A stretch of DNA of 63,491 bases, the filler included, from Dimorphilus gyrociliatus (Eukaryota > Animalia > Annelida), in NCBI GenBank assembly GCA_904063045.1. It is 4 parts of 4 records of this genome, joined end to end, with 100 filler letters (N's around TTAATTAATTAA, not from the genome) between each part and the next. Parts side by side here need not be neighbours in the genome. Positions count along the whole stretch, not along the records: positions 25,899 to 48,046 come from CAJFCJ010000259.1; 3 more parts are not named here. One strand, 5' to 3'. Numbering within the stretch: position 1 is the stretch's first letter; every line of letters starts with the position of its first letter. The position numbers were made by a program, and so were the translations under genes. Shown piece by piece: positions 4,647-48,046 of this stretch. A model generated the notes under the pieces. That model was not told the origin of the DNA and made no database searches. It saw only the letters and a list, made by a program, of their open reading frames with translations.

Positions 4647-4779
4647 TCAATCCACATGTATTTTCTTTTAAAGCTAATAAGTTAAACCAACTTTATTGGT
4701 TGTAATACATCTGTTCAATCCATCTATCAGTTGTTCTTCACCTCTCATCTCTACCTCTAACCTGAGAGGATCTTTTCAC

Positions 4780-4930
4780 TTTCTGGTTTGGTAAATTGGC
4801 TATGAGTGCTACAAACTAACTACCATGCTATTCAACTTTCTTATATCTATTTGCTGCAGTACTGTATTTTAAATAAATCATTTAAACTTCAACATTTGTT
4901 GTTTAAGAGTGTCGAGTAGAACCAGCACTT
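4780..4930 (+). mobile_element. Diverged LTR fragment of the contig-C LTR family
   Basis: GTTTGGTAAATTGGC...GAGTAGAACCAGC resembles 52230-52370 (GTTTGGTAATTTGGC...GAGTAGAACCAGT). Confidence 0.5.
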
Positions 4931-26016: not shown

Positions 26017-26600
26017 CAGTATAGGCAAAAAGTCCCCAGCCACCTTGCTACCCAGCTATACAGAATAACTACTTTTAATAGATAATAAAAATGATTAATA
26101 TGTATAAACTAATATCCTTTACAACAAAATATCAAAAAATTGTTTTTCTTCTATAAAATCCAGTTTTAGTTATTATACCTCAAAAAAGGGATTACTTAAA
26201 AATGAGTCACCATTTATTTAACTAAATATTTTATTTTTTAAATCTACCTTAGGACACTGTTTTACAATTTCTATACATGAATTATTATCATATTTTATGA
26301 AAATATAGTAATAATACTTTTAAACCTTTTTAATACTTGGTATGACAACCCTTATTGAAAAGACACAGCTGTAGCCTCTTTCTAAAACTATTAAACAATT
26401 TTTCAACATATTCAGTTGGAATATTGTCAAATTCTTGCTGTTGTCCATAGATTTTCTTCATTTGTGCACATATGTTTACCAACCCTTCCTTTTAGGTATG
26501 ACCATAAATTTTCTATAGGATTTAGGTCAGGACTCTGGGCTGACCAGTCTTGCAAGTGCCTTATGTTCTTTTCATCTAGATACCTTAAGGTACTCCTAGA
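26017..26600 (-). mobile_element. Tc1/mariner remnant: transposase C-terminus and one end
   Basis: The minus strand reads DWSAQSPDLNPIENLWSYLK and RLQLCLFNKGCHTKY*, with stops and frameshifts. A TA|CAGT terminus lies at 26015-26020. Confidence 0.8.
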
Positions 26601-26601
26601 T

Positions 26602-26995
26602 GGAGGGGTTGTTGAAAACGCCCACTGTGCTTATTGAAAATGACAGATTTATAAATGATAAATTGCTGAACATTTTTCCAAAAGCTCACCAACACAAATA
26701 TCACCATTTTCAAATTCATCCCAAAATTCATAAATTTTCTTCTTAATAGAATACAGTTATATTATTCTTACGTTTTGGTTCTATATTCATCCTCCCTCAA
26801 TTCTACATCTCTCTTCTGATTCGGTTCTATTTGGACCAGTACTTACCTACAACCTCAGAAGGAAAGTACAATAACTATATTTATAATTAAAGTTCATTAA
26901 TCAAAAACCAGAAATATTAGTTATATACAGTCTTTAAACACCACTGGGTGTTTTAAATAAGCAATAACAAATAAGGGCGTTTTCAACAATATCCC
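26602..26995. mobile_element. MITE-like element with GGGxxxTTGTTGAAAACGCCC TIRs, abutting the Tc1 remnant
   Basis: Perfect 15-bp inverted repeat at 26609-26623 and 26975-26989. No clear TSD. Confidence 0.6.
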
Positions 26996-27380: not shown

Positions 27381-29440
27381 TTAAGGAGTTACATGACAAA
27401 CTTCAATATACGGATTATAAACTTTTGTTGTTGTTACAGCAAAATATAATTTAGTAATTTCAAAATCATACTCATCACAATTAAATTTATATTTATGATA
27501 GTTGTTTATACTTAATGCCCTATTTTCCAATTTGCAACTTGAAGCTAATTTATCTTTGTTATAGCTATCAAAGAATAATTGAATGAATATGAATTCAGAA
27601 TTTTCTCTGCTGAAATATAGTACTGTTTCCGGTTTTAAATTTCTTGATTTATAGGTTATATTATTCAAATTGGAAACTTCAATTACAGCTGATGTTTCTT
27701 TTATACTTTCACAAGTGGATGTTAAAGAATCCTGTAATTTTTCCCCATAATTAGTCTGACATCTTCCTTTAGAACGCAAAACAACACTTCTGCCAACTGT
27801 TTTGTATTGAAAATAGAATTAATTTAAAAAGAGAAAAATTAATGAATTTACATTTACCTAGATCTGATAATAAAACTTTATGCAATTGGCTATTATTAGT
27901 ATTTTTGAATCTTATTTCAGTTAATTTGTTCACATTTAATTGACCAGTTAATTTAATATCTTTACCATACCTTCTACCTCTGCCAACTGTTACTATACCA
28001 TCTGCTATAGTTACCCAAACATTGGTCCATTTGTTACAAACTAAATGTGATCTTACAGTTGTGTCATAAAATTTAGTTAAATTTTTAGTTTCAATATAAC
28101 TTTGTTGGGTGTTGGATAAAAAAATTTTAAAAGCAAATGAACCGCCATTTTGAAAAGTCACTAGAAAATCACCGCACAAGTTTTTTGAATTTTTTTCAGA
28201 CAATACACTTAAAGTGAATGCTTTGAAACTGTGATGAATGTATGAAGGTAGATAATAAATAGATGTTTTAACTCGTTCAATCAATTTTGGAATTTTAGAA
28301 AGCAAATCTAAAAATCAAAAATATAGTTTTAATTTTTTCACTAAACATCAAATTACAAACCTTTAACAAAAATTTGAATTAATCCAAATCCAACATTATT
28401 TTTTGATGATTCAGCAATTAGAATTGTAATTTCAGATTCTATGAATTCTTTTGTATATTTATAACATTTTTGGTGTTTATTATTTTTTAATTTAATATAT
28501 TTTTTCCTTCCAGAAGACCATTTTGTACGAATTTCTTCAATATGCTTGTTAGAGTATTGCCTAATTTCAGATTGTAAAGAATAGAATCTAAAAAGTATTG
28601 AATATGTCAACAGTTTTTAGGTAATACCTTTGGGTAAGACAATATAATTCTGGCTTTGCAACTATTTCAAAAGAAACCTTAACAAATTGCCCAGGGCAGT
28701 CACCTGCACCACATGAAGCGGTCCATTCCTGATATAACTCTAGGAGTGAACTGGTAAAATCCAATGCCAAAGCGCATTTCCATTTAAATCCTTTTTGACT
28801 GGATACACTACATGTCCACCATTTGAGCTTGAAGCTATATCTGTATAAAATGGTATGGTGCTACTACTATCTTCTGCTGAAGTATCTGTTTTGAAAAACA
28901 GTAAAAAATTTCTTTGTTTATTTGCAATAACAATAAGAAAATACTGACCATTATCATTTGCAAAAATCATTATTGAACCCAAACCAATATTTGTACTTGC
29001 ATCTGTAAGAATTCCTGTAATTCCAATACTTTTCACTGGTGTCCTCATGACTTTTTGTTGTAGGACACACATCATTGATAATTCAATTGGAAATTTAAAC
29101 TGTAATGTTTTGCCAAGAAAATTTACTTCAACTTCCTTTACAGTGTTCAAACCTGTATGAAAACTTTTCCCAAAACACATTTCCTTCATAATATACTCTT
29201 TTTGAAAACTTACTATAAACCTTTCCAAATGACAATTTTGTTTACAAGAACTTATCCAAGAGTTCATACTTTTCCATGGTGGAGAAAGTGATTTTCACAC
29301 TTGAAATTTACTCCTTTTACTAAAGATTTTGTTGTATTACTTGTACAGGCTGAATTCATTGATATATCAGCAATATTGATCAATTCTTCTCTTGGATTAT
29401 GCTTAGTGAATTATTTAGTGCATACAATAAATAATTTTAA
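27381..29440 (-). CDS. Intron-containing host gene with a farnesoic-acid-O-methyltransferase-like (Methyltransf_FA-type) domain; frameshifted
   Basis: CNKWTNVWVTIADGIVTVGRG resembles that domain's C-x2-W-x3-W-x7-VG motif. A GT-AG intron lies near 27800-27860. Apparent 1-nt frameshifts occur near 28770 and 29270. Confidence 0.5.
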
Positions 29441-29504: not shown

Positions 29505-30439
29505 TGTACACATACATTCGTCAGCTATATTCTACAATAGAGAAGTAGTATTGAACCAGTATTGTACTATGCAGATAGCACTGATAAAGATAAGCAGTAG
29601 TGACCTAGTTTCGCATAGGGCAGTGCATACACATTATGCAGTAATAAAACCTATTGAATTATATAAAGAATATTTGCTATTTGCAACCTAGCATTAATAT
29701 TACAATTTATTAATCCATAAATTTATGATTTCGAACTAAAACTAGTTCAATTAATTATCAATTATGCTTAAATTCTAAGGTTAGATTATATTCACTATTC
29801 AACAGTATTGTATACACAATACTGTTCTTTTTAACATGCATTAATCAGATATACTTCCTCCTTATATGCTGATGCTAAATTTACTAACTCAATCAATTGA
29901 ATATCATTATTAAGGTAGAATATAAAAACGGTCAAATATACAATCTACATGTTTTCTTGATTGTTGGACTTGTCCTACTAAAATTGTTACATCTTATGCA
30001 ACTCTCCAACCTTCGAAATTCAACTATTATTTAGAAGAGGAAAACAATAAAAACATGACCATATTTAGAACTTTTCTTTGTCTTCAAATGTTACTTTTGT
30101 TTTTGTGAACATTGAAATTTGTGAACTATCAACCCTTAAAAGAGTATATAAACCCTACGAAATTAACAGTTGATAGTTCAGTTTTCTAACCGTCAGCTAG
30201 TTGTTTAAACTAGCTTGTTTAGAACTAGAAGCTCATTTTACTCAATACATATTCTTTGGACGAAATACTGGTGTTTTGTTAATCAATTTCTACCGAAATT
30301 GCCTTTGTTAGACTATTTGTGGACGAACTTTAAAGGTTCTATTTGGACCAGTACTTTGGCAAGTTGGTAAATGATTGGAAAGGACGATTACAGTTGTGAC
30401 GAACCAGAAATTCCTACAATTACAATACAACAAAGTACA
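29505..30439 (+). repeat. 5' LTR (TGTAC...GTACA)
   Basis: Direct repeat of 38145-39079 at offset 8640, with 12 substitutions and no indels counted line by line. Confidence 0.95.
30145..30183 (+). promoter_or_regulatory. LTR core promoter (TATA plus initiator)
   Basis: TATATAAA at 30145-30152 and TCAGTT at 30178-30183, about 30-35 nt apart. Confidence 0.6.
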
Positions 30440-32023
30440 AATATGGCGCAGTCGACAGCCCACAATGCTACTTCAATGAATGTTATTTTGGTTTATGAGA
30501 ATGACAAAGCCAGAGCCAAGGAAGTAGATGAGTATCTTTCAAAAATTAATGAATTAATGTTGAGAATTAAAAGTAGTGGAGCCAAAGTTGATGGTAATAG
30601 CTTTTTAAAGTACCATTTGATGACTGGGGCAGCTACAATTCCTGAAGGTATGGTTAATCCTGATCCTACTCAACCAAAATTCAGTTATGATGGCATTCAA
30701 GATAATGCTTTGGAAAAGACAATTGCAAGTCTTCTAATTGATGCTAATGAGAAACCTAATACTACTTTGCTGAGACCCTATTCTGGTAGCAAAGATACTT
30801 GGGCCTTTAAGAGGAACTTTCAAACAGCTTGTGAATTAAACCTTTGGGATACAGAAGAGAAAAGAGTTCGAATGCTGAGAAAATACACTACTGGAAGAGC
30901 CAGAGATGTTATTGAAAGTTTACCCTCCATGGCAAATGAAAATGAAATTTGGGATGCATTGGATGAAGAATTTAATCCAGATCCTATGGCTTACAAAAAA
31001 GAAATTGATAGATTGAGACAGTTCAATGATGAAACTGTCCAAAGTTTTGTTAGAAGAAGTAAAGAACTTGTGGAAAAATTCCTACCATTCAATACTACTG
31101 AAATGGCTTGTGTTACTGAAAGAGTTAGAGAACTTCAACTGTTAACTGTATTCAGGAATGGTCTTAAAGGAAAAATTGTTAATCATGTGGAAAAAGATGG
31201 AAAGATTAACTCAGTTAATCAGTATATTAAATTGGCAAAAAGAGCAGAAATATTTTTTGATAATGCAAGAAAAGAAAGCGAAAATGAATTCAAACAGTAC
31301 AAAAGGAGATTTGACAACAATCAGAGTAACTCAAATCAAAATGAACATACATTTAAACCTTTTTCTCAAAATAGATTTCAACAACAAAGAAATGGAAATG
31401 CAGGAAATAATGAAAAAGGCAGCTTTAACAGACTAATACATGTTGGACCTGATGAACCTAATGAAACTGAAATTTCTAAAGGAAGAATGGCAATATTTAA
31501 TCTCAAAGAAGAGAAAATCGCACATTTTAAGTGTACTTCTTTGGTAAAAGGCAGAAAAGATTTCCAATTTCGAATGAAAAATCATAATGGAAGAGAGATT
31601 ATTGCTTTATGTGATTCAGGAGCACTTTTGTCATTTATTACAGAAAAAGAAATCAGGTTAATGGATTCTAAATTCATCAAGAAAGAAACTACTGGCTTAC
31701 CAATCATCACTTCAGCAGAGGGAAATGCTTTAAAGACAAAAGGAAAAACAAAACTGAATATTCAATTTAATGGAAGAATTATGGAACAAGAATTCTTTAT
31801 TATGGAAAAACTAGATATGGCTATAATACTTGGTTGTGATTTCTTAGAAAATGCTGGAGCTCTTATTGATTTTGCAACAAAACAAGTTTCTCTTCCATTC
31901 TTTATCAGAAAAGGACAACCAGTTAGAAAGTTTTTGCAATATAACGAAAATCACCAAACAAAATTTGGAAAACAAGGCAGTGTAAAAAAAGTAACTGTTT
32001 GGAATGATGGGACAGTATTTTGA
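30371..32023 (+). CDS. Gag plus aspartic protease
   Basis: Retrotransposon-gag-like YSGSKD..F...F...C....W segment and protease IALCDSGALLSFI ... ILGCDFL. Confidence 0.9.
   Translation: MIGKDDYSCDEPEIPTITIQQSTNMAQSTAHNATSMNVILVYENDKARAKEVDEYLSKINELMLRIKSSGAKVDGNSFLKYHLMTGAATIPEGMVNPDPTQPKFSYDGIQDNALEKTIASLLIDANEKPNTTLLRPYSGSKDTWAFKRNFQTACELNLWDTEEKRVRMLRKYTTGRARDVIESLPSMANENEIWDALDEEFNPDPMAYKKEIDRLRQFNDETVQSFVRRSKELVEKFLPFNTTEMACVTERVRELQLLTVFRNGLKGKIVNHVEKDGKINSVNQYIKLAKRAEIFFDNARKESENEFKQYKRRFDNNQSNSNQNEHTFKPFSQNRFQQQRNGNAGNNEKGSFNRLIHVGPDEPNETEISKGRMAIFNLKEEKIAHFKCTSLVKGRKDFQFRMKNHNGREIIALCDSGALLSFITEKEIRLMDSKFIKKETTGLPIITSAEGNALKTKGKTKLNIQFNGRIMEQEFFIMEKLDMAIILGCDFLENAGALIDFATKQVSLPFFIRKGQPVRKFLQYNENHQTKFGKQGSVKKVTVWNDGTVF
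30444..30458 (+). other. Primer-binding site, complementary to a tRNA-Ser-type 3' end
   Basis: TGGCGCAGTCGACAG begins 4 nt after the LTR end. TGGCGCAG-type PBSs are the tRNA-Ser type in Gypsy-group elements. Confidence 0.8.
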
Positions 32024-32720
32024 AGATTCTGACACTCCATCTGAAGTTTTTGATACTCCATCTGAAGTTTCAGATAGTGTGGACTCAGAAATGGAAGTTA
32101 CTGATCCAGATACTGGCTATGATACAAGCAACACTCATGGTTCAAGCATAGTTTATGAGGGATTCAATGGTTTTGATTCAAATAGCAATTATGGCACAGA
32201 TGAAAGTTCCAGTACTTCTGAAAATTATGATACAGAAACAAGTATTGAATCAGATCACAGCCCAGACTCAGATTTGGATATAATCAATGGTACAAGCTCA
32301 TCTGAAGATGAAATTAGTGATTCAACTGATTCTGATCATGGTTCAATGATTGTTATAGACTCATCTGAGGAAGAGCTTGATAACATAACTGAGCCTGATA
32401 ATGATTCAATGATTGTTATAGACTCATCTGAAGAAGAGACCAGTAACACAATTGAGTCTGACAATGATTCCATAATGGTTATAGACTCATCTGATGAAGA
32501 GACTGGAAATATACCTAAGTCTGACAATGACTCAGTTATTCTCATAAATTCCTCTGAAGAAGAAACTGAAGACTTGGCTATGGAAATGGAAATGAAACCA
32601 CAATACATAGAATTAGAAGATGGAATAACTATCAAAGTGCAAAAAGAACAAAAGAAAATCCAGTTACTCCTGAAATAGAAGAATTACAGTTGGAAAGTAT
32701 TGAATTTGAACATTTGTCTA
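32004..32720 (+). CDS. Acidic Ser/Asp/Glu-rich PR-RT linker with a 21-aa tandem repeat
   Basis: 63-bp units start at 32343, 32406, 32469 and 32532. The segment is offset from the gag/pol frame by compensating 1-nt indels near 32020 and 32650. Confidence 0.7.
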
Positions 32721-34461
32721 ATCAAAATGTACACAATATTAATTCAAATACACTAGAAATTGACAATTATTTACATGTGTCCAAAAATAATCTTGACAAG
32801 AACAGAGAAGAATTAAAAGAAATGATAAAGAATTATGAAGATATTATTGCTACAAATCAGAATGACATTGGTTCACCAGATGTTCCACCAATGGCAATTG
32901 AATTATTGGAAGATATAAAGCCTTTCAAACAAAGACCATACAGATTGCCACCAACAAACAGCAGGAATGCAGGGATCAATTAAATGGATTATTGGAAAAT
33001 GGTCTAATTAGAGCAAGCAAAAGCCAATGGGCTTCACCCATTGTTTTTGTGAAAAAGAAAGAAGGAACATTAAGAATGTGTGTGGATTACAGAAAACTTA
33101 ACAAGCAATCAAAAAAGAATTGTTATCCAATCCCACATCAGGAAGATTTATTTGATAAGCTTGGAGGAGGCCACAAATATTTTTCTATATTGGATTTAAC
33201 AAGTGCATTTCATCATATTCCAATTAAAGAAGAAGATAAGGAGAAAACTGCTTTTATTACACCATTTGGTTTATTTGAATTCAACCGCATGCCATTTGGT
33301 TTGGCAAATGCACCTTCACACTTCAGCTATATCATGGCAAATTTTGTTATTAATGGATTGGAAAACTTCTGCATTAATTATATGGATGATATTATAGTTT
33401 TTACCAAAACATTGGAAGAACACTTTGTAGCTCTACAGAAACTTATGGAAAGAATCAAGGAAAAAGACTTCAGAATTAAACTGAGCAAATGTGCATTCTT
33501 ACAAGAATCAGTTCAATTCCTTGGTCATAGAATTACACAGAATGGTATTGAAACTGATCCTGAAAAGATTCAAAAAATAAAAGATGCCAAATTACCTATG
33601 TTTGCAAATACTCTGTTGAGTTTTGTGGCATTTTGTGGTTATTATAGAAGATTTGTTAAAGATTTTGCAAAAATCACAAAACCTTTGAGAGAATTATTAA
33701 AAGTACACCAAAAGACAGAAAAACTGAAATGGACAAAAAAAGCAGAGGAAGCTTATGAAACACTAAGGAATGCAATGACAGAGCCCCCAATCCTTCAACT
33801 GCCAGACTTTACTAAATCATTCTATTTAACAACAGATGCTTCTAATTATGCAGTTGGTGCAGTTCTAGAACAAGAATGGGAAGAAGATGGAAAGAAAATA
33901 AGAAAACCAATTTCTTTTGCTTCCAAGCTCCTAATCAATACACAACTAAGATATGCAGCTTATCAAAAAGAGGCTTTTGCAGTATATTGGGCAGTACAAA
34001 AATTCTCCCATTATCTACAGTATAAGAAATTTTTTCTCTACACTGATCACCAAAATTTGGTACAAACATTTGTACAAAACAAACTGAATACAAGTACTGT
34101 TAAATGGGTGATGGCACTTATGGATATGGATTTTGAAATAATATACATACCAGGAAGAACTAATAGAGCAGACTGGATATCAAGAATTGGTGAAACTGAT
34201 GAAGTAATTGATTTTCGTAATTTACTTAAGGAAAGATTAAATGAAGAAAAACAAAATGGCAATACAGTTCCCCAATTAGCAGAAAGAAAGGATATGCTTA
34301 AATGCTTTTATATTGATACAGAGGACTTAGAAGAATTAGATGATTGTTTAGATGACAATCTAGACAATGATTATGATGAAGACATAACTGAAATCCAAGC
34401 CCAGATTATGAAACTAAAAATCACACCAGTTGAAATAAACTTCTATAGAGAACAAGTTTAG
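32690..34461 (+). CDS. Reverse transcriptase and RNase H (1-nt frameshift near 32958)
   Basis: Motifs QRPYRLP, SQWASPIVFVKKK, RMCVDYRKLN, RMPFGLANAP, YMDD, TDAS and TDH. Confidence 0.95.
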
Positions 34462-35217
34462 ATACTCCACTAATGAAGTTGTAGACAAATTGGAAGGAGA
34501 AAACATTGATAATGGGTCTTTGAATGAATATGGAAACTTTATTGAATCTATGTTTGTAAAAGAAGACCTTGTATGGTATCTAAATGGCTGTCAACCACTA
34601 CTTGTAATTCCACTATCAACTCTAACCAACTTACTTGGACAAATTCATCAACATCAACTATTTGAGCACTATGGTGTAGACATAACAATTCACACTTTGG
34701 AGCAAGCTTTCTGGCACCCAAAGCTAAAGAAAACAATTAAAGATCACATAAAGAGTTGTGAATTTTGTGAGCAATTAAGAGCACCAGGCAACAAACATCT
34801 GTTGGTTGAAACACCTCACCCAACTTTACCAATGCAAAGAATAGCTATGGACATAATGGGACCTCTGACTGGACATGATTCTTACAAGTATATACTTGTC
34901 ATTATAGACCACATGTCCAGATTTACCAACATATTCCCTCTAAAAACTCAAACAGCTGAGGAAATTCTAAACATTGTTTTTCAACTATTTCCCAATATTT
35001 GGTATCCCAGAAGAAATTCTCACAGATCAAGGAAGGAATTTCTTGGGAAATCTTTACAGAAATGGTGACATCAATGGGAATACGAAAAATTAAAACAACA
35101 GCATTCCATAGCCAAAGTAATGGAATGGTAGAAAGAAAGAATTTGGAAATTCGTAGAGCACTACATAAACATGTAGTTATGGAACAATAACAGATTGGGA
35201 CAAGACAGTTACCATTA
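34460..35217 (+). CDS. Integrase (frameshifted; runs into the gap)
   Basis: H-x6-H...C-x2-C zinc finger, AMDIMGPL, ILTDQGRNF (shifted frame) and SNGMVERKN. Confidence 0.9.
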
Positions 35218-36155
35218 NNNNNNNNNNNNNNNNNNNNNNNNNNNNNNNNNNNNNNNNNNNNNNNNNNNNNNNNNNNNNNNNNNNNNNNNNNNNNNNNNNN
35301 NNNNNNNNNNNNNNNNNNNNNNNNNNNNNNNNNNNNNNNNNNNNNNNNNNNNNNNNNNNNNNNNNNNNNNNNNNNNNNNNNNNNNNNNNNNNNNNNNNNN
35401 NNNNNNNNNNNNNNNNNNNNNNNNNNNNNNNNNNNNNNNNNNNNNNNNNNNNNNNNNNNNNNNNNNNNNNNNNNNNNNNNNNNNNNNNNNNNNNNNNNNN
35501 NNNNNNNNNNNNNNNNNNNNNNNNNNNNNNNNNNNNNNNNNNNNNNNNNNNNNNNNNNNNNNNNNNNNNNNNNNNNNNNNNNNNNNNNNNNNNNNNNNNN
35601 NNNNNNNNNNNNNNNNNNNNNNNNNNNNNNNNNNNNNNNNNNNNNNNNNNNNNNNNNNNNNNNNNNNNNNNNNNNNNNNNNNNNNNNNNNNNNNNNNNNN
35701 NNNNNNNNNNNNNNNNNNNNNNNNNNNNNNNNNNNNNNNNNNNNNNNNNNNNNNNNNNNNNNNNNNNNNNNNNNNNNNNNNNNNNNNNNNNNNNNNNNNN
35801 NNNNNNNNNNNNNNNNNNNNNNNNNNNNNNNNNNNNNNNNNNNNNNNNNNNNNNNNNNNNNNNNNNNNNNNNNNNNNNNNNNNNNNNNNNNNNNNNNNNN
35901 NNNNNNNNNNNNNNNNNNNNNNNNNNNNNNNNNNNNNNNNNNNNNNNNNNNNNNNNNNNNNNNNNNNNNNNNNNNNNNNNNNNNNNNNNNNNNNNNNNNN
36001 NNNNNNNNNNNNNNNNNNNNNNNNNNNNNNNNNNNNNNNNNNNNNNNNNNNNNNNNNNNNNNNNNNNNNNNNNNNNNNNNNNNNNNNNNNNNNNNNNNNN
36101 NNNNNNNNNNNNNNNNNNNNNNNNNNNNNNNNNNNNNNNNNNNNNNNNNNNNNNA
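35218..36155. other. Scaffold gap (938 N)
   Basis: Run of N without a linker core. Confidence 0.99.
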
Positions 36156-36157
36156 CC

Positions 36158-38130
36158 AAATTACAAATGGCCAAGAACCACAGTGGTGGAAGAATTTACA
36201 ACAATCCTTCAAATTGGCAAGGCTTATTGGAATCCAAGTCAAGATAAAATAACCACAAATTTGGAATATTTAGAAGACTGTTCTATTAAACAAAAATTTT
36301 GTAGAACTTTGGATTCAATCATTATATTTTAATCCAGAAAAAGGCCAAAGTCTTCTAGGCCATGTTTCACCATGGAAAATAGTTTCCCATAATGTGGAAT
36401 GTCTAAAACTTGGAGGATATTTTTCCTGCCCCAACTATGCAATAATGGATTTACCTTACCAAGACAGATATATCAAAGGATATGGTGGTCCTGGTACCAG
36501 AGTATTGGTACCCCAGAAAGAATATGACTTACTTAGAACTGATCTTACAAATTCTAATTATGCTGACAATAAAATAATAGAGGATACAAAATACAAGATC
36601 ATTTCAATAAAGAAGTTAATAGATTGGAGAAATATATTGGAAAGAAATCATCACTAAGAAAGGCCAATGTCACAGAAATACAAGATATTTTAACATATAA
36701 TATTGGTATAGAGATGGTGACAAAACCTACCATATGCTGATAAAAAATCATGCAACACCATTAGTGAGGACTTGGTTTGTCAAAGAAATTATTTCTCCAG
36801 ACATCTGGGATATTCACAACAAATACATACTAAAAATGCTGAAAACAACAAAGCTAAAACCTGCCAGACTAGTAAGATCACAAGATTTTGAATTGGACAA
36901 AAAACCAGTTACTTTCAACCCACTCCCAAACATGAACATTTGGTATCAAAGCCAAAAGATACACAATTTCAAATTCATACAGAAAATGGCAAATATACAC
37001 TTTTACAAAGAAAACCAATAAATCACAAATGGAAGAGGAAACAATTAGAAAACATAGAGATTCCAGAATCACACCAAATAAATATAAAAGATGCTATAAG
37101 AACAGCTGCACTACTAAACAATATTGACAAAAATTTTCAAAATTTACAAACAGTTTTTAAACAAGTTTCACAACTTTTATGCAAAGAATTTATCATGAGA
37201 AACAAGATGATAGCCCTACTTACACCACTATCACCCTCAACTACCAACAATACTTGGATCTAAACATGGAACCCATAGTACATGGTTAGGAGATCTAACA
37301 ACCCTCAATACATGTACAGAATTAAAAACTGTTCAAGTAGTTTGTGACACAACAATTATAACAAAAAATGGATTATGTTCAAAAGAATTTCTGATCAAAT
37401 ATAAAGATCTCCTATTCTCAATTGATCCAATACTTCATCATGCTTACCACATCACAAAAGAAGACATAAGATATGGTACATGTGACCAAACTCAGCATCT
37501 CTTCAAGATCAAGAAAAATCCTTTGGATGCAGAACAAAATCAATATGCCATACATTCTGGCAAGAAGACATTTATCTATTATACAAGGAAAGGATGCAGG
37601 TTCCAAACAGCAGCAGCACAATCAATCAGAATGAAAATCAACAGTCAAATTGAAGAACCAAAACTAGAAGTTGTCAGACTCACAGAATTATTACAACTAG
37701 TATAAAAGAAGATGTGGGCAAGAAACATTATCAGATACAACAAGTTTTGGAATACATACAGGATACTTTGACTAAGCATAGAGAGCATATTAACTTTGCA
37801 AATGATTTAGGAATTGATGCAGCCTTGTCACCAACACAACATCTATTTTCTTCATGGATAAGAAAACCTTTCAAAATACTAATAGACACACTTCTGCCAA
37901 TTATACTCTTGATTGGAATTGGATTCTTCATCTACTTTATTTGGAAGAAAAAACTGAAAAGAGTTCAATTTACCAGACTGTCTAAACTACTGACAAAAAC
38001 AAAAAGATTACCTTCAGCTCCAACAGCTGAATCAGAAGAAATAGAACTGCAAAATTATCCTATGTTCAGAAAAAGTGGTGATAACATAATTGTCACAAGT
38101 CCTAGACCTTTCGTGGAAGCAAGGTCTTAA
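36158..38130 (+). CDS. Envelope glycoprotein, herpes-gB/chuvirus-like class III type; several frameshifts
   Basis: Fragments NYKWPRTT...LEDCSIKQKFC, VSQLLCKEF...LSPSTT, ILGSKHGTHSTWLGDLTTLNTC and NGLCSKEFLIKY, plus the TM LLPIILLIGIGFFIYFIW. The stop overlaps the PPT. Confidence 0.7.
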
Positions 38131-38140
38131 AGGAGTGGGA
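38129..38140 (+). other. Polypurine tract
   Basis: AAAGGAGTGGGA ends 4 nt before the 3' LTR. Confidence 0.85.
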
Positions 38141-38144
38141 TGTT

Positions 38145-39079
38145 TGTACACATACATTCGTCAGCTATATTCTACAATAGAGAAGTAGTATTGAACCAGC
38201 ATTGTACTATGCAGATAGCACTGATAAAGATAAGCAGTAGTGACCTAGTTTCGCATAGGGCAGTGCATACACATTATGCAGTAATAAAACCTATTGAATT
38301 ATATAAAGAATATTTGCTATTAGCAACCTAGCAATAATATTACAATTTATTAATCCATAAATTTATGATTTCGAACTAAAACTAGTTCAATTAATTATCA
38401 ATTATGCTTAAATTCTAAGTTTAGATTATATTCACTATTCAACAGTATTGTATACACAATACTGTTCTTTTTAACATGCATTAATCAGATATACTTCCTC
38501 CTTATATGCTGATGCTAAATTTACTAACTCAATCAATTGAATATCATTATTAAGGTAGAATATAAAAACGGTCAAATATACAATCTACATGTTTTCTTGA
38601 TTGTTGGACTTGTGCTACTAAAATTGTTACATCTTATGCAACTCTCCAACCTTCAAAATTCAACTATTATTTAGAAGAGGAAAACAATAAAAACATGACC
38701 ATATTTACAACTTTTCTTTGTCTTCAAATGTTACTTTTGTTTTTGTGAACATTGAAATTTGTGAACTATCAACCCTTAAAAGAGTATATAAACCCTATGA
38801 AATTAACAGTTGATAGTTCAGTTTTCTAAATATCAGCTAGTTGTGTAAACTAGCTTGTTTAGAACTAGAAGCTCATTTTACTCAATACATATTCTTTGGA
38901 CGAAATACTGGTGTTTTGTTAATCAATTTCTACCGAAATTGCCTTTGTTAGACTATTTGTGGACGAACTTTAAAGGTTCTATTTGGACCAGTACTTTGGC
39001 AAGTTGGTAAATGATTGGAAAGGACGATTACAGTTGTGACGAACCAGAAATTCCTACAATTACAATACAACAAAGTACA
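38145..39079 (+). repeat. 3' LTR
   Basis: About 98.7% identical to the 5' LTR (12 differences in 935 bp). Confidence 0.95.
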
Positions 39080-39862
39080 CGAATGTCAGCAAGAAAAGTT
39101 ATATATTTGATTCTTGGAAAAAAACAGATGGAATTAAATTTAAATGTTAAATTCATTTAAAAATTCACATAGAATATTTTTTCACTTTCATTTTTCTCTG
39201 GCTCTGAGTGAAAAATTTCATCAGTAGGCAGTCTATTCTAGTCAGTTTGAATAGAGTGTATATAGATGACATTAAACGTTGTTTAATTGTTAAAATGGAA
39301 AAAGTGAGCCAAGAATATTTTTATCATTTTTGTTTTTCTTTGTCTAATCACAGTAATTCAAAAGTTATCTGTTTGAATAGACAGTGGAAAAGCTATCTAT
39401 GAGAAAAACTCATGTAGTCATAGAATATATGACAATTCAAACAGCTATTCTCCAACTGAACTGCATTTTACATATGTTTTTCTCAGAACAACTTTTCAGA
39501 CTGTCTTTTCAAACAATTAACTCCTCAATTCTTTTGATTATATTTTAATATATTTTCTTTAAGAAGTACACAGCATTTAGTTATCTATATGAACAGGAAA
39601 TGCTCACAACAATAAGTTTAAGCAATATTTTTTTAATTAGCTCCATAGCAATTCAAATATATACTACACTGAACAAATCATAATATTGAGATTACAAATT
39701 GCAACATTTGAAAATTTTAACTTTTAAATTACTTTGAACAAAGAAATGCAAAATGTAAAAAGATTCTGTGCTGAATTTTTTGTTTTCAGCAATTGTACAA
39801 CTTATAATTGTCAGAAAATTCATTTTTAACAATTAAAAATTAACTTTTGACAAAGTATAAAA

Positions 39863-42571
39863 GGGGTCGGGTGTGAACGTACCTGGGTGCGAACGTACCC
39901 GGGTGCGAACGTACCCTGGGCGGGTGCGAACGTACCCAGGTACGTTCGCACCCTATTTTTATATTTATTTTATTTTTGAATTTTTGAATAAACATGTACA
40001 TTGACACCCTTTTTTCCTTCTGTTCCTTCATTATATATTTGTTAATATATTGATTTGATAGAATGCAGATATTAAATAGAATACATATCCCATCAATATT
40101 AAATTACTACTTTAAAAGAAAATGTTGTTGAAAGTGAAATAGCAGCCATTTTAATAGTGATAGTTTTATTAAATAAACTTTCACTTGGAATATTTATCCT
40201 TGCAAAAGTAAAGCTATATTTACTGAATAAATTTGGACAAAGTTCTTCTTGGAAGCTTCAACAGAAGTGAGTATTTATATCTAATCATTGAGATTGTTGA
40301 TTCATGATATTTTGATGTAATATACTATCTTCAATTGTGAAAAAGCTGAATATTTTTCATAAATAAAATTTCAGCCATTTTGAATATTTGGAAAGGAAAT
40401 TTATTGATAACTGGAAATATTTTTAGATAACCATCTACATTTGATTGAAGATTAAAAAATGGCTTTCAAATGTCACAATTGTCATTCAACAATTTATGGA
40501 AGGCAAAAATATTTGAAATGCAGCCTTTGTAAGAATCTTATTCATAGGAAATGCACAGGTATGTAACTCTTTAATCAGCTTTCATGTAATTATATTTTTT
40601 AACATATTCTTATAGAAACACATAACATACCAATTTGCAAACCTTGTAACAAAAGAAAATGTACTGTCATGCTCAAGAAGTTAACTAATCTGGAAATTCA
40701 TCAATTCAAAGTAAATTCTGAAGAAAGCTTTATTGATGAAAGAAATAAGATTGCTGCAGTTGAGGAATCAATATTGGAGGATGAAAATCATGTTCTTTCA
40801 GAATGCCAATCAATGGACCTAGACTCTTTGGAGGAAGTTGAAGAGAATGCTGAAGAATATTGTGAATCATCCACAAAAAGTGATTTTGAGATTGTAAAAG
40901 GAGGAAGTAGAAAGGGACATGACATTTTACTGAATGATGGATATTCTTTTGTTGTTAAACATAAAACACCATCAAGTACTATTTGGGTGTGCAGTGTGAG
41001 AAGTAAGAAGAAAAGATGTGTGGCCAGAATAAGACAAAATGGAAATTTATTTCTCAAAGGCAATTTGGAACATAATCACAACAGAAAAAAGAATTTAGAA
41101 GTGGATATTAAAGTGAAAACAGATTTGAAAATTGTTTGCAGAAGTGATAATCAAACATCTGGAAGAAGCATTGCTGAAAAAGTTCTTCTATCCTATGAAC
41201 CCAATGCAACTTGTCTTCCTGATATCAACTATTTGAAGAGAATGGCAAACTCAAATAGACAAAAGTTTAGGCCAGTGGAACCTAAAGTGTACAACTTTAA
41301 TTTAGATGAAACATTTTTGCCTGATGAATTTTTGCAGAAAGATATTTGTGAAAATGGAGAAAGAATTTTAATCTTTGCAACAAACCATCAGCTGAATTTA
41401 TTATCAAAATCCAACTGTTGGTACATTGATGGTACTTTCAAGATTGTAAAAGAACCATTTTATCAACTTGTCACTATTCACTCATTTGTTAAGAAGAGTG
41501 GTGATATGAAGCAAGTTCCTCTTGTTTTTATTTTTCTGACTTCAAAGCATACCAAAGCATACTTACAAGCATTTCAAGTAAATATTTCATATTATCTCTT
41601 CAAAAGTGATGATAAATAAAGTTGCTTTTTTGTAGCATATCAACAATCTTATCAATGATTTTCATCCAAAAAGAATTACAATGGATTTTGAAAAAGGACT
41701 ATGGAAAGCATTATCAAAAGTATATCCCCTCACTGAATTTCAAGTTTGTGTATTTCATTTCACACAAGCAGTATACAGGAAAATACAAGTCAGTTACATT
41801 CAAATATATATAACATTATCTATTAAATAACTTATATTATTGAATAGGCTCTTGGCTATGTAAAGAAATACAAAGAAAAAGGAAATGATTGGAAAGATTT
41901 CAGAAAATTGATGGCTCTGCCATTCTTGCCAGCACATATTATTCAACCAACATTTGACAGCATAAATGCAGAACTTTGTGAAAAAAATAGATTTTTGGAC
42001 CTGCTGCAATACTTCCAAACAAACTGGATCAAAAATAAATTATGGAAACCAAATAACTGGTCAGTTTTTGGTTTGTCTATTAGGACCAATAATGATTGTG
42101 AAGGATGGCATCAAAGAATGAATAGTAAGCTGCCTGCTAAAGGTTCTTTTTACATGCTGGTTGATGAGCTAAAAAAAGAGTCTGAGTTGATTGCAGTTTA
42201 TGAGAAATTACTGTCAGAAAAAAGGATTTACAAACATCAAAAGAAAAAGTATATTGACATCCAAAAGAAAATTTTTGATTTATGGGATGATTTCAAGTTG
42301 AACAAATTGACATCAATTGATCTATTAATGCAGACATCCCATATCTACTCTCCAGCATAAATATCATTTGTCAAGCTTTATTGTTTTTTAGTATAATATT
42401 TAGTCTTTTAAATACATACTTTTAGATTTATAGCTAAATCTTTTATTCAAAAATTCAAAAATAAAATAAATATAAAAATAGGGTGCGAACGTACCCAGGT
42501 ACGTTCGCACCCGCCCAGGGTACGTTCGCACCCGGGTACGTTCACACCCAGGTACGTTCGCACCCCAACTC
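39863..42571 (+). mobile_element. Mutator (MULE) DNA transposon, 2709 bp, ~130-bp TIRs, 9-bp TSD
   Basis: TSD AGTATAAAA at 39854-39862 and 42572-42580. The TIRs are built from GGGTGCGAACGTACC units. Confidence 0.95.
40669..42360 (+). CDS. FLYWCH-MULE transposase with two introns and one frameshift
   Basis: Motifs W-x-C..C..H-x-H, WYIDGTFK, TMDFE, CVFH and RTNNDCEGWH. Introns at 41578-41635 and 41789-41847; frameshift near 41727. Confidence 0.9.
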
Positions 42572-43346
42572 AGTATAAAATAGTTTAATTCTGATATTTG
42601 AGTGTTTGATTGATCACTTCTCAGTCAAGTATGGGGAATAAAGTCTAAAGGCTTATTTTGGTTAATAAAAAACAACAGTTGATGGAGAGAAAAGTAGTCA
42701 AATGAACTAAGAAATATCAAAAATTAAAAAATTTTAACACAATGAATCCCTAAAAATCATAAATTTACAATAGAATAATATTATCATTTTATCTTTTCCT
42801 TGTCCAACTGATGGACTTGTTTTGTCAGTTAACTGTAATACCCAGTGCATTAGCTTATATTGGAAAAAAAACGCATACAATTATCAGTTACTGAGAGTAA
42901 TTAAACAAGCTCTCAAATATCAATATTGTTCATTTAAAGTTCTTTGTTTAATCACAGGAATTCAAAAGTTAACTCTTCCAAAAGATAATCAAAGAGCTAT
43001 GTCAGAGAAAAATGATGGTAAAATCCAGTTCAGTCAAAGAATAACAGATAAATTAACAGCTGTTAAATTTTCTGAAAAATAGCTTTTCCTATGTCTATTC
43101 AAAGAGTCAACTTTTAAATTACTGTGATTAGACAAAGAACAACAAAAATGATAAAAATACCTTGGCTGAGGTTTTCCATTTCAGCAATTGAAGAAGGTTT
43201 TTTTTTATCCATATATATTCCAGCAGTGTATTTGAATATCCAAACTAATTTAAAATTGTAACATTTATTTATAAAGAGCTTTATCTATACGTTATATTAA
43301 AATAGTCATATCCATTTAAAGTTAACACATTCCTTTTGGATAGAAG

Positions 43347-44600
43347 ATGAAAATAAAAGAACGAATCAGCACAGTGCTCAAGCTACTGAAATGCAGTCCA
43401 AATTTTAATGAAAATATAGCACAGGCATACCAAGATTGCAAGAATCTGAAGGATAACTGTAAAATGTTGCTTGGTTTGTGGGAATGTGCTAATAATGAAC
43501 TGAGAATAGAAATATTTGAAAGATTGAAAAAGATAGATTTTAGTTCAAACATAGAAAATGATCTTACATTTCAGATTGTTAAATTGAAAATGAAGGAAAA
43601 AGTAGATAAAAATAGGATTTTGCAGCTTTTAGAAGAAACAAACATAGTATTTAGAAAGAAAATAGAAAAAATACTGGTAAAATATAAAATTCTACAAAAA
43701 AGAGTTAAATATATTGCAATTAAACCTCATATTTTAAATGACAAAGATTTTTACAAAGAAATGTCCTATAAGCTGATAAAAAATTGTATATTGGAAAGTA
43801 AAGAACCTTTAAATGATATAAATGTTAGAAATCATAAAAATAATTGTGATACTTGGATTTTAAAATATCTTTAAGAGATATAGATGTCAGAAATCATGAA
43901 AATACTGAGAATAATTGTGATATTTTGTCTAATTCTGATATAAGTCATAATGTTTCCAATATAAATTACACCATCTCTGGTATAAATTACAATATTTTGA
44001 ATGTCAAACAGACTGGAAATATTTTAAGTCTGATTAATGGTGGAGATTTTCACAGATTGGAGAGATACATGAAAAATGAAATAAATAATGCACAATGTGA
44101 TCTGCATTATAGCAATCTGCACAAAATATACTCTCTAATTCTAAGATTAGCAGATATAGCAGGACCTTCACCACAAATAGTTAATATTTGCAACAAAGAT
44201 TGGCAAAAAAATCTTTTTGACCAACAGTTAGTGTTTAGATCAGCAAAAGAGCCATTTCGTGATTTCAAAAATCTATGATCTTTCTAAAAATAAAACTATA
44301 AAAACAGTATCAATATTGATTTTCTTATAAAAGAACTCAATTTATTCTCCTTAAATCAAGAAATACAATTCTAAGAAAAGTGACAGATAAAAAAGAAACA
44401 AAGAGATGGTGGCTGGATCATTATAAACTCAACACTGAATTAAAAAATATTCTCAATTTCACCAATCAGTTACAATTTTCCAATTCTTTTCTGATATGCC
44501 AAGATGAAGACCTGATAAGTTTCCATTCAAACATACACATTCTCTGGAAAGCAAATATATAATGAGATTGCCATGCACAGAATTCATTATGGACAAAAAA
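43347..44600 (+). pseudogene. Disrupted intronless hypothetical gene, K/N/I-rich
   Basis: Consecutive ORFs (175, 141 and 60 aa) in shifting frames, with an internal duplication LNDINVRNH..NNCD / LRDIDVRNH..NNCD. No family recognised. Confidence 0.35.
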
Positions 44601-45815
44601 GCACTGATATTACAGAAAATATCAAATTTAATATTATAACAGGTGAAAATGTCAATAAAATGGAACAGAAATACAAAACTTCTTAGATATAAGCAAAATA
44701 GAACAAGAAAAGGAAAAAACCAACAATAGCAGCATATTTTGGACAAGGAACAGGCAATTTATTTCTGAAAGACGCTAAAACTAATCATTTTCTACTTTTT
44801 GGCTGTTCATCAGTGAAAATAATTAAAAGAAACAGTTTTCAGAGAATCAGATACACCCATTCGTTGCTTAAAGGCACCACAGAAACATTCTGGGCTGTCT
44901 GTGGGATGTAATGGACCATGATATTGACAATTTTGGGCTCAGTTTATCAAACATTATAATAAGAACAAAACTACCATAAAGCCATCAAGATCGCTAAAGA
45001 CTCTGAGACTGTGATACCTCAACTGTGCAAGCATCATTTGTTATAGCAAATTCCTCTTTTAGTTGTTTTATAAATAAATCACATTCTATCCTAAAAAAGA
45101 TTTTTCTTTCTAAAAATGACATGTCATTCTAATTGATTTATCTTTCACCTTGTGATACTTTCATAAACTTTCTAAAAACAGATCAGAATTTCTACAATAG
45201 AAATGTTGATAAAAAATTTGCTCCTTTTTGTCTCCTTTTATTTTAAAATATAAGAAGAGAAATCGAGATGAATTTAATGTCAAAGAAACAAAGCAACAAA
45301 AAAATTTTAGAATCTTCTCTTTTAATGTTAAAGAAAATCAAAAATGATTTGAATCAAATGAAGAAAGATAAATCTTATAAAATTTGATAATAAAGAGAGA
45401 AATAAGTAGGCTGAATATTACCTGGCAAAGAAAAGTCACTCAGTTGCGTCACAAAACTCGCTATTCTGTCCACCTTTCTATTTTTCATCACAATATTTTG
45501 GTTCTATTGCTACTATAATTGGATTATCCAATTAGTTTATAGGTTTATAATTAATATTATTTAAATTAAACTGTATACTTTTAAAATTATAAAAAATAAA
45601 ATTAGAATTGTTCTTTTATCAATAAAATTTTAAAATTGTTCATTATTCGAATTAAAAATTGTGAATTTGAAATTGTTTTGAATATTTTTAGATTGAACAC
45701 TCTTAATGATTAAAATTAAGAATTACAAATATTTTTCTTATTAATTTTCTTCAATAATTCAATTTTTTTAATTTTCTAATTTTTACAAAAAACCATCGCC
45801 CCTCTTACAATTAAA

Positions 45816-46369
45816 ATGGCAATCATTAGTAAAAGAGAAAAGAACAAACAGCATCTTTTACAAATTAAAGAAGTAGAATCAACCTACTAAAATATTATAA
45901 TTTTTGAAATGGCACCTCTACATACAAAAAACCTTCATAAACTGAGAAAAATTATAAAAAGCAATTCCAAACTGATATTTGGAAAGAAAAATATAATAAA
46001 AAAGGTTATGAAAGACAGAAATATTGAGTTTCTCAATAATCTTAAAAATAACACTTTTTTAGTTTTTACAAATGAGCAAACACCTGCAATAATTGATTCT
46101 TTGGTGGCACTTAATAAAGAAAAAACAGAAAAGATTCTTTTTAAGGGTGTCATAATGAAGCACAATGTTCCTGTCTCTACAAACTTAAAAAAGAATCTTG
46201 GACTGCTGCCAGTGGTGAAGAGGCTGGACAGCTGCTCATTGATCAGGACTTTCCCCTTGACAATATAGAACACAGAAAAATAATCAAATTGTTCCAAATG
46301 GATGATGACCATCTTAAAATCACACCACTTTGTGTTTATGAAGACCAAGAATTTAAAAAACTAAATTAA
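45816..46369 (+). pseudogene. MRT4: Mrt4 (uL10/P0-like ribosome assembly factor) pseudogene, microsporidian-like
   Basis: SKLIFGKKNIIKKVM and NTFLVFTNE, then KIIKLFQM...ITPLCVYEDQEF* in a shifted frame. In-frame TAA at 45888-45890 and a frameshift near 46222. Intronless, with CCCC at 45799-45802 upstream of the ATG. Confidence 0.75.
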
Positions 46370-46698
46370 AGACTAATTTATTTTAAACACTCTTTCTAAA
46401 ATATTTTTACTTTTTTGGAAAATTGCACAATTTACTGCATAAATAAAATAAAAACAAAGAAAAAAATTTTAAAAACTAATTGTATTTTAATTCAAATGCG
46501 ATCATTTTTTAATACTCTCATAAACCATTGTAAAATGTCAACTTTTTTATCTCAAAAATTTGATTGCTTTTTATCAAAAAATAGCATTTTTAATGTTGTG
46601 TAGAATTTTATTCTAAAAAATAAAAAAATGTGCATATTAAAATAAATGTTTAAAATTTTATAAAAAGTAATTGTGTATAAAAGAAATTTACATTCTTT

Positions 46699-47044
46699 TT
46701 ATTTATCATTTACAATCTTAGGATTCATTTCTCGGAGTCTCTTGAGTGCTTCTTTTCTATAATTGAATTGACAGTTGTGCTGGTTGTGAAAACAGTGATT
46801 TGCACAGAAAATGTGGCTGCATCTACAAGAGATATCAGAAAGAATTTTTAGTCTCTTTTCACAGAAATGGCATTGCTTTCTATTTTTTATTGGGACTGTT
46901 TCTTCCTTTCTCTTTTCTATCTTTTCAACTGTATTTTTTTTATTCTCTTTATTTCTTTTATTTCCACATCTTCAACAATCTTTCTCTTCAATTGCTGGTT
47001 GCTGTGAATCTCTCATCACTGTGATTCTCAACTGACTGTCTCAT
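46699..47044 (-). pseudogene. AN1-type zinc-finger gene, disrupted, microsporidian-like (not in the ORF track)
   Basis: CHFCEKRLKILSDISCRCSHIFCANHCFHNQHNCQFNYRKEALKRLREMNPKIVNDK*. The ATG is directly preceded by CCCCC. The length of 346 nt implies a frameshift, and there is an in-frame TGA near 46973. Confidence 0.8.
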
Positions 47045-48046
47045 GGGGGCTTTTTGGTTTTTTTTTTTTAAAAAGTTTACCCTTCAATTCTCTATTTAAA
47101 TTATTGTTTTAAAGAATATTTAAAATTATTTTTGAAAATTACATTCAAACTGTGTTTAAGATAGTTATTTTATTTTTTATTCCAAATTATATCAAGATTA
47201 TTGACATATGATTGAGATAAAATTACATCACTAAGTTTGACAGATTATATAAAGTTATCTTTTTTAGTTTATTATGAATTATAGCAAGTAGTGCTCTTAG
47301 ATCTAAATGATTCTTTTATTATAGGATAATATAGAAAGTTATTCTATTTAGTTTTTAATAAATTATGTTTAATTGAAATATGCTTTTAGATCTTAATGAT
47401 TTTTTTATTATAAGATTTTGATCAACTATTAATGATTTGGTTTTTTTGATTTAGTTTGACATATTTTTAAAACTAGATATTTAAAAAAATATCTTAATCA
47501 TTATAATGTATTGTGATTTCAAATGATTTTTAAAGTTTCATTTGAATTGTAAATTTTTTTGTTCTAAGCTTTGAGATGATTTTTTGAACAAAATGTCTAA
47601 TACATGGTTCTATTAAAACATTTAAGTTGTATATTTTACTTTAAAATTTTCAAAACATTTCAGATGTTGTTTTTAATCATGTATTCAATTAAAATATATT
47701 TGATTTGTATAGTTAAATAAACTCTAAGTATATTTTGTTATCTCTTATCAAAGAGTAACAATTTTATGAAGAAATAGTTCTTTGAATTCAAATTATTGTT
47801 TTCAATATAATAATTTTCAACTACAATTAAGAAATTCAGAAAGCTTTAATGATTAACTATTCAACATTAAAGTTTGAAATGCTTTTCATTGTTCCTGTTT
47901 TTTTTATCTCTGTGTTTTGATTGTTAAATTTCGGATCTTTAGCATTCATTGGTGCTGGTTTTTCTTGAAATATCAACTCTAGCACCTTTCCATTTGTTTT
48001 TCTTATTTTGTTTTCTGACTTTGTTATTTATTATTAGACTAAATAA

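Follow-up and report, generated by a model that had tools for sequence, protein, structure and literature searches.

Can DNA from an intracellular parasite that has a nucleus of its own settle in the nuclear genome of its animal host, and how would it be recognised there? This question is raised by a block of genes in the genome assembly of the annelid Dimorphilus gyrociliatus (GCA_904063045.1). The window, by which we mean the whole stretch of 63,491 nucleotides (nt) that was analysed, includes a piece at 25899-48046 (CAJFCJ010000259.1). Towards its right end, at 43347-47044 (3.7 kb), four genes of microsporidian type lie side by side: a separase, a small membrane-protein gene and an Mrt4 gene on the plus strand, and an AN1 zinc-finger gene on the minus strand. 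The original prediction, made from the sequence alone, had seen the last two of these and proposed a microsporidian insert decaying in the animal nucleus. Both genes were confirmed, and the block proved to be larger than described, since the separase (43347-45062) and the small gene (45268-45525) belong to it as well. The proposed origin is borne out by homologs and synteny, and the decay by lesions shared with an independent sequencing run; integration into the host nucleus is plausible, not demonstrated. The features of the block are as follows.

43347-45062, plus strand: separase (peptidase C50) pseudogene, from tblastn to the Pseudoloma separase
45268-45525, plus strand: homolog of a Pseudoloma predicted membrane protein of 85 amino acids (aa), from tblastn
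45799-45802, plus strand: CCCC run, a promoter-proximal motif of microsporidian type, 14-17 nt before the Mrt4 ATG
45816-46369, plus strand: Mrt4-like (uL10/P0 family) pseudogene, from Pfam Ribosomal_L10, HMMER and tblastn
46699-47044, minus strand: AN1-type zinc-finger gene, from the ZFAND5 match and tblastn to Pseudoloma AN1
47045-47049, minus strand: CCCCC run adjoining the AN1 ATG on its upstream side

Origin of the four-gene block

The block is colinear with contig LGUB01000002 of Pseudoloma neurophilia (GCA_001432165.1). By tblastn all four genes are found there in the same order and orientation, with amino-acid identities of 37-53% and E-values from 1e-12 to 1e-64. The same arrangement, with separase, small protein and Mrt4 on the plus strand and AN1 on the minus strand, is present on a metagenomic contig (ERZ17100903 NODE_646750, hereafter L002). 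The source of L002 is an undescribed microsporidian; after AN1, a gene at 4572-4874 (minus strand) which had been missed by the gene finder, it continues in synteny with a homolog of a 367-aa protein and a DHHC gene.

The separase match to Pseudoloma spans 43356-45056 at 37-44% identity, reaching 44% over amino acids 21-170 (E 2e-27). For the small gene, the tblastn match at 45280-45513 (43.6% identity, E 1.7e-12) corresponds to 2674-2931 of the Pseudoloma piece L001, and a match to L002 was found at 3245-3610.

Within the Mrt4-like gene, an open reading frame (ORF) at 45891-46265 was assigned to Ribosomal_L10 (PF00466) with an E-value of 1.4e-10 and 41.6 bits against a cut-off of 22.8 (Pfam). 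An exhaustive HMMER search with this piece over 1.84 billion representatives returned three relatives, the sole named one being Pseudoloma KRH95267 (42% identity); the other two stem from a marine eukaryote catalogue and a metagenome of the European Nucleotide Archive (ENA). Animal and fungal Mrt4 proteins failed to reach an E-value of 0.001 in this search. A word-indexed protein search with the same piece gave no match, nor did two scans of JGI metagenomes in which nearer relatives were sought for Mrt4 and for the N-terminus of separase. Direct comparison with Pseudoloma by tblastn aligned 45819-46363 in two frames at 44-47% identity (E 2e-39). In its record, KRH95267 (186 aa; 6001-6561 of L001) bears the name 60S acidic ribosomal protein P0. 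Of its solved relatives, yeast Mrt4 ranks first (E 3.2e-5), narrowly ahead of P0, so that the public name is probably wrong.

The minus-strand ORF of the AN1 gene (46971-46708) contains all eight ligands, spaced as C-x2-C-x10-C-x-C-x4-C-x2-H-x5-H-x-C, and matches human ZFAND5 (E 1.8e-12); its Pfam score (PF01428) is 18.8 bits, under the cut-off of 27.9. With the Pseudoloma AN1 gene it shares 53% identity over 47044-46702 (E 8e-22, tblastn), and 10 of the 11 N-terminal residues are as in Pseudoloma, the first nine being identical. Both genes named in the original prediction thus match Pseudoloma, and the best named homolog of Mrt4 is microsporidian.

The gene architecture was also as predicted. 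The four genes are compact and intronless, Mrt4 and AN1 converge with their stop codons 329 nt apart (about 330 bp had been stated), and the DNA is indeed AT-rich, the GC content being 26.6% in the block and 21-33% across the whole piece. The C-runs reported upstream of the start codons are present at 45799 and, on the minus strand, at 47045-47049. Runs of at least three C or G are scarce here, with only 11 in 4.8 kb of the window. In Pseudoloma, Mrt4 has a CCCCC run at an equal distance from its ATG and AN1 has one 5 nt upstream; a C-run near the start was found in seven of the eight Pseudoloma genes of this locus. No such run lies upstream of the separase and small-gene starts in the window.

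Homology to the Pseudoloma neighbourhood ends with the block. Neither Ssl1, the proteasome subunit, the 367-aa protein nor the tRNA synthetase of Pseudoloma gave a tblastn match anywhere in the piece 25899-48046, and outside 43347-47044 no homology to Pseudoloma neighbours was found in it. A tRNA scan of the stretch was likewise negative.

Taken as sequence evidence, these comparisons strongly support the view that the block is microsporidian chromosomal DNA. Since it retains intergenic DNA and genes on both strands, the segment was copied as DNA and not by way of retro-copies. Mrt4 of Pseudoloma and of L002 share 39% identity, and the block genes stand at the same distance from Pseudoloma as L002; therefore they have drifted little since function was lost. 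We infer that the donor was an unsampled lineage, about as distant from Pseudoloma as living microsporidia are from one another.

Assembly errors and real lesions

Nonsense and frameshift lesions had been reported for both Mrt4 and AN1. For their evaluation we used an independent public run (X1), which holds 79% of the sampled words of the stretch and whose contigs cover all of it, and a second sample from the same organism (X3). Between X1 and the window there are about 37 single-base indels and 5 substitutions, namely 7 indels and 1 substitution at 43129-44688 and 30 indels and 4 substitutions at 44671-47779. Such an excess of indels over substitutions points to consensus error and not to mutation. 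The errors are local: within 43199-44343 there is no indel against X1, and the two long terminal repeats (LTRs, 935 nt each) of a neighbouring retrotransposon show none against each other, which suggests that the sequence from 44344 onwards comes from long reads or gap filling and was left uncorrected. Over 44344-47990 about one single-base indel per 100 nt was counted, with almost no substitutions, and reading frames are unreliable there.

Many frameshifts of the window are accordingly assembly indel errors. When those edits of X1 that are listed were applied by script to the window separase, its three frames merged into a single alignment of 316 residues to the Pseudoloma separase (E 1e-64). 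The edits repair six frameshifts in separase, where the indels at 44344-44714 that occur only in the window are errors of the assembly, as well as one in the small gene, whose frame shift at 45379 is missing from X1 and is mended by a deletion there. The AN1 gene of the window is read in three frames; the frame of its start codon (47044) differs from that of the zinc finger, with two shifts between 47005 and 46935. AN1 may be intact in the true sequence.

Could all lesions, then, be sequencing errors in genes that are intact in a live parasite? The number of indels against X1, and the seven frameshifts which its edits mend, speak for such a reading. However, X1, with a k-mer depth of 116-303, shares five stop codons, one frameshift and a His-to-Gln change with the window, and we regard this explanation as barely credible. 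In separase, the stops common to both are TAA at 44285, TAA at 44291 and TGA at 45012, and the common frameshift, at 43850-43871, adjoins a diverged tandem repeat of 62 nt. The small gene carries a common in-frame TAG at 45407-45409, and Mrt4 a common in-frame TAA at 45888-45890, aligned to Lys or Ala in its relatives. The catalytic His of separase is replaced by Gln at 44744-44746 in both sequences (YFGQGTG, compared with YFGHGNG in Pseudoloma and L002). Of the His-Cys dyad only the Cys is thus present, in the retained motif GCSS at 44801-44812. The separase codon at position 44276 is TGA in the window and in X3 and CGA in X1; such a polymorphism between stop and sense is expected of unconstrained sequence.

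A changed genetic code was considered as a further explanation for the in-frame stops. A ciliate-type code, with TAA and TAG read as Gln, was rejected: in-frame stops of all three types are present, and the ORFs of 519-550 aa in a neighbouring gypsy element are open in the standard code, so that a code change is excluded. The three stop types also count against a live parasite with intact genes.

The tandem repeat at 43810-43925 has a spacing of 62 nt and 71-76% identity between its diverged units, which encode the peptide L-N/R-D-I-N/D-V-R-N-H. Its two copies stand in different frames, and the real separase frameshift falls between them.

Stops, a frameshift, the loss of the catalytic His and the TGA/CGA polymorphism, seen in X1, X3 or both, show at the sequence level that at least separase, the small protein and Mrt4 have lost their function. 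The earlier claim of lesions therefore holds for Mrt4 by its TAA shared with X1, while many frameshifts of the block are errors and real lesions are fewer than claimed. No second, intact version of the block at 90% identity or more was found in X1. Since the essential genes separase and Mrt4 are broken and X1 has no second version at this level, the block is dead DNA.

Flanks, junction and the case for integration

Transposons lie to the left of the block, and to the right the piece soon ends.

29505-39079, plus strand: gypsy-type LTR retrotransposon with protease, reverse transcriptase, RNase H and integrase
39259-39540 and 42949-43215, no strand: inverted repeat bracketing the MULE, 73% identity (blastn)
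39869-42565, plus strand: Mutator-like (MULE) transposon with a FLYWCH and transposase gene and 124-nt terminal inverted repeats
43216-43346, no strand: left junction interval, between the end of the repeated inverted-repeat element and the separase ATG
47050-48046, no strand: tail of 20% GC with no recognisable gene, reaching the contig end

The piece has a single gap of N, at 35218-36154, and from its end to 48046 no N was found, which confirms the contiguity stated for 36156-48046. The context of the block points to a host: the MULE, with its canonical introns, lies beside it without a gap and is followed by the gypsy element, and beyond the gap there are a Tc1 fragment and an ORF resembling Methyltransf_FA. 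A distance of 131 nt separates the inverted repeat from the separase start, and left of this junction tblastn detected no homology to Ssl1 or the proteasome subunit. We consider it probable, with considerable reservation, that the block is parasite DNA integrated among transposons in the nuclear genome of the animal. Part of the block (44185-44374) was also found in X3.

The MULE bears directly on the question whose genome this is. Its terminal repeats (39869-39992 and 42442-42565) are 96.8% identical, and the two GT-AG introns that had been noted measure, as stated, 58 nt (41578-41635) and 59 nt (41789-41847). The transposase reading frame is open. In X1 the k-mer depth of the MULE is 3257-4469 compared with 116 for the block, about 38 times as much, and indicates a high copy number. 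The nearest protein clusters in the Atlas belong to Arthropoda and Rotifera. The terminal repeats consist of direct and inverted copies of the 16-nt GGGTGCGAACGTACCC, far richer in GC than the surroundings; judged by sequence, these copies are probably transposase binding sites. The inverted repeat around the MULE (depth 600-1500 in X1) is either an older, decayed element hit by the MULE or a long sub-terminal repeat of the MULE itself.

These properties count against the idea that the contig comes from a transposon-rich microsporidian with a large genome, co-assembled with the host, in which the block would be a decaying segmental duplicate with functional copies elsewhere. Indeed, microsporidian genomes that are large and AT-biased and contain repeats as well as long segmental duplications have been described (PMC6944219). 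The 5' part of the block seems to be duplicated, judging by its depth of 2.6 times that of the rest, the block lies at a contig end adjoining repeats, and paralogs diverged by more than 10% would be invisible at the threshold of 90% used on X1. However, the canonical introns, the open transposase frame and the roughly 38-fold depth suggest that the MULE multiplies in a setting able to splice introns of this kind, and the protein clusters closest to it are animal. Apart from the block, 17 kb of scaffold showed no microsporidian homology when searched by tblastn with the Pseudoloma neighbours, a functional ortholog of the block lineage was not found among 15 billion public proteins, and the X1 contigs total 122 Mb, far beyond any microsporidian genome. 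We regard an origin of the whole contig in a parasite genome, the chief rival reading, as unlikely, if worth keeping in mind.

The junction raises the different possibility of a chimeric assembly, in which a repeat that is shared or of low complexity led to a false join between a parasite fragment and host transposons, possibly when gaps were filled with long reads. The sequence from 44344 onwards is rich in indels like uncorrected long-read sequence, while 43199-44343 and the LTRs are free of them; the read-derived contigs break at each repeat boundary, and the N gap of the scaffold falls within a repeat. Against a misjoin, overlapping X1 contigs cover the path from 43029 through 43147 to 44688 and follow the same course as the window. 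The genes are broken and hence are not working copies of a living parasite, and the lesions together with the polymorphic stop indicate neutral evolution. A chimera appears improbable to us. As a check on the junction, the X1 contigs give a divided answer: they tile the path, but they break at the repeats and none spans it.

Several observations weigh against integration and keep our preference for it restrained. Only the left junction is visible, its flank consists of repeats, and the block occupies the last 4.9 kb of a contig that ends at 48046. The X1 contigs break at 43047, 43129-43147 and 44671-44688, and none bridges the transposon and the block. Depth, compared among parts of the region itself, is uneven (237, 303, 116 and 210). 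X3 has just 191 nt of the block. A further 27 indels of X1 lie beyond those listed, and both the frame change in Mrt4, at about 46205-46216, and the shifts in AN1 are read in the window sequence alone. The animal-type ORF is located across the N gap, inside a repeated element. In addition, animal-like transposons can occur in microsporidia.

If integration did take place, a piece of microsporidian chromosome of about 3.7 kb, complete with intergenic regions and promoter motifs, would have been copied into a transposon-rich region of the animal nuclear genome. It would have entered the germline, for instance through the end-joining of DNA that an intracellular parasite had set free, and would now be decaying neutrally. 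A later partial duplication could have affected its 5' part (43129-44688), as may be gathered from the depth ratio of 2.6 (k-mer depth in X1 of 303 over 43129-44688 compared with 116 over 44671-47779, with the contig break at 44671-44688 between them). The 5' two-thirds of the separase remnant seem to be present in two to three copies with differing right-hand contexts. Taken jointly, the observations may describe a synteny-preserving transfer of several microsporidian genes into an animal germline, a fossil of an unsampled lineage that is polymorphic among host samples, was partly duplicated after its arrival and is described here for the first time at the sequence level; for this combined account as a whole we see about an even chance.

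Further elements of the left flank complete the description of the piece. The LTRs of the gypsy element (29505-30439 and 38145-39079; 935 nt each) are 98.7% identical, and the element is interrupted by the gap 35218-36154. A search with its reverse transcriptase gave a best, partial match of 76%, the remaining matches being at about 40% in many taxa. Three to four tandem units of 63 nt, at 32253-32504 in its gag-pol region, encode an in-frame peptide repeat. On the minus strand, 26430-26630 encodes the C-terminus of a Tc1/mariner transposase (peptide ...SPDLNPIENLW...), and 27384-29294 contains three ORFs (145-184 aa), of which two overlap; a frameshift or an intron may account for this. One of these resembles animal Methyltransf_FA by language-model features (Atlas; 0.97), unconfirmed by Pfam, and another has a weak match to DUF1647. 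The left-flank ORF had no sequence homolog in the protein search and no Pfam match. When ORFs of the window were looked up by exact sequence in public assemblies, none was on file.

Comparison with known systems

Microsporidia are known to receive host genes and transposons. For the reverse flow, from parasite DNA to host nuclei, the literature we found holds a single mention, one sentence that reports sequences resembling those of microsporidia in host genomes of the Darwin Tree of Life and takes them for horizontal transfers of DNA (PMC12558613). In a compendium of 9,495 horizontally transferred metazoan genes, a term count of the text gave no mention of microsporidia, and no dedicated description of a microsporidian insert in a host genome was found in the literature. 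If our interpretation is true, a eukaryotic intracellular parasite leaves fossils in host genomes much as mitochondria leave nuclear mitochondrial DNA segments (NUMTs), and such fossils would mark earlier infections by lineages of which no sequence exists. For genome projects there is a twofold warning: a microsporidian-like match need not be contamination, and what looks like a pseudogene may be an error of the assembly.

The closest system is the Pseudoloma contig LGUB01000002 itself, which has the same four-gene order, the convergent Mrt4 and AN1 genes and the C-runs upstream of the starts. In contrast to the block, its genes are intact, the spacer between the 85-aa gene and Mrt4 measures 3 kb and holds two small ORFs, compared with 0.3 kb in the block, and it has Ssl1 upstream and the 367-aa gene downstream, neither of which is matched in the window. 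Foreign genes in transposon-rich regions of bdelloid rotifer genomes (PMC4632278) also present non-metazoan DNA by transposons, AT-rich and with short introns, and rotifer clusters are among the protein clusters closest to the MULE; we take this link as a lead only.

With NUMTs and with the Wolbachia inserts of insects and nematodes (PMC3998919) the block shares the colinear, multi-gene DNA of an intracellular resident, non-functional and lying among transposons in apparent host nuclear DNA. It differs from them in that the donor is a eukaryote, a parasite that has a nucleus of its own, and in that only one junction is seen and integration is unproven. The Darwin Tree of Life case is alike in the proposed direction, from microsporidian to host genome, and in proposing it without a live infection. 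That sentence of the report gives no anatomy, whereas gene content, synteny, lesions and flanks can be described for the block in Dimorphilus gyrociliatus. Provided that integration is confirmed, it is the best-described case so far of a nuclear insert passed from a microsporidian to its host.

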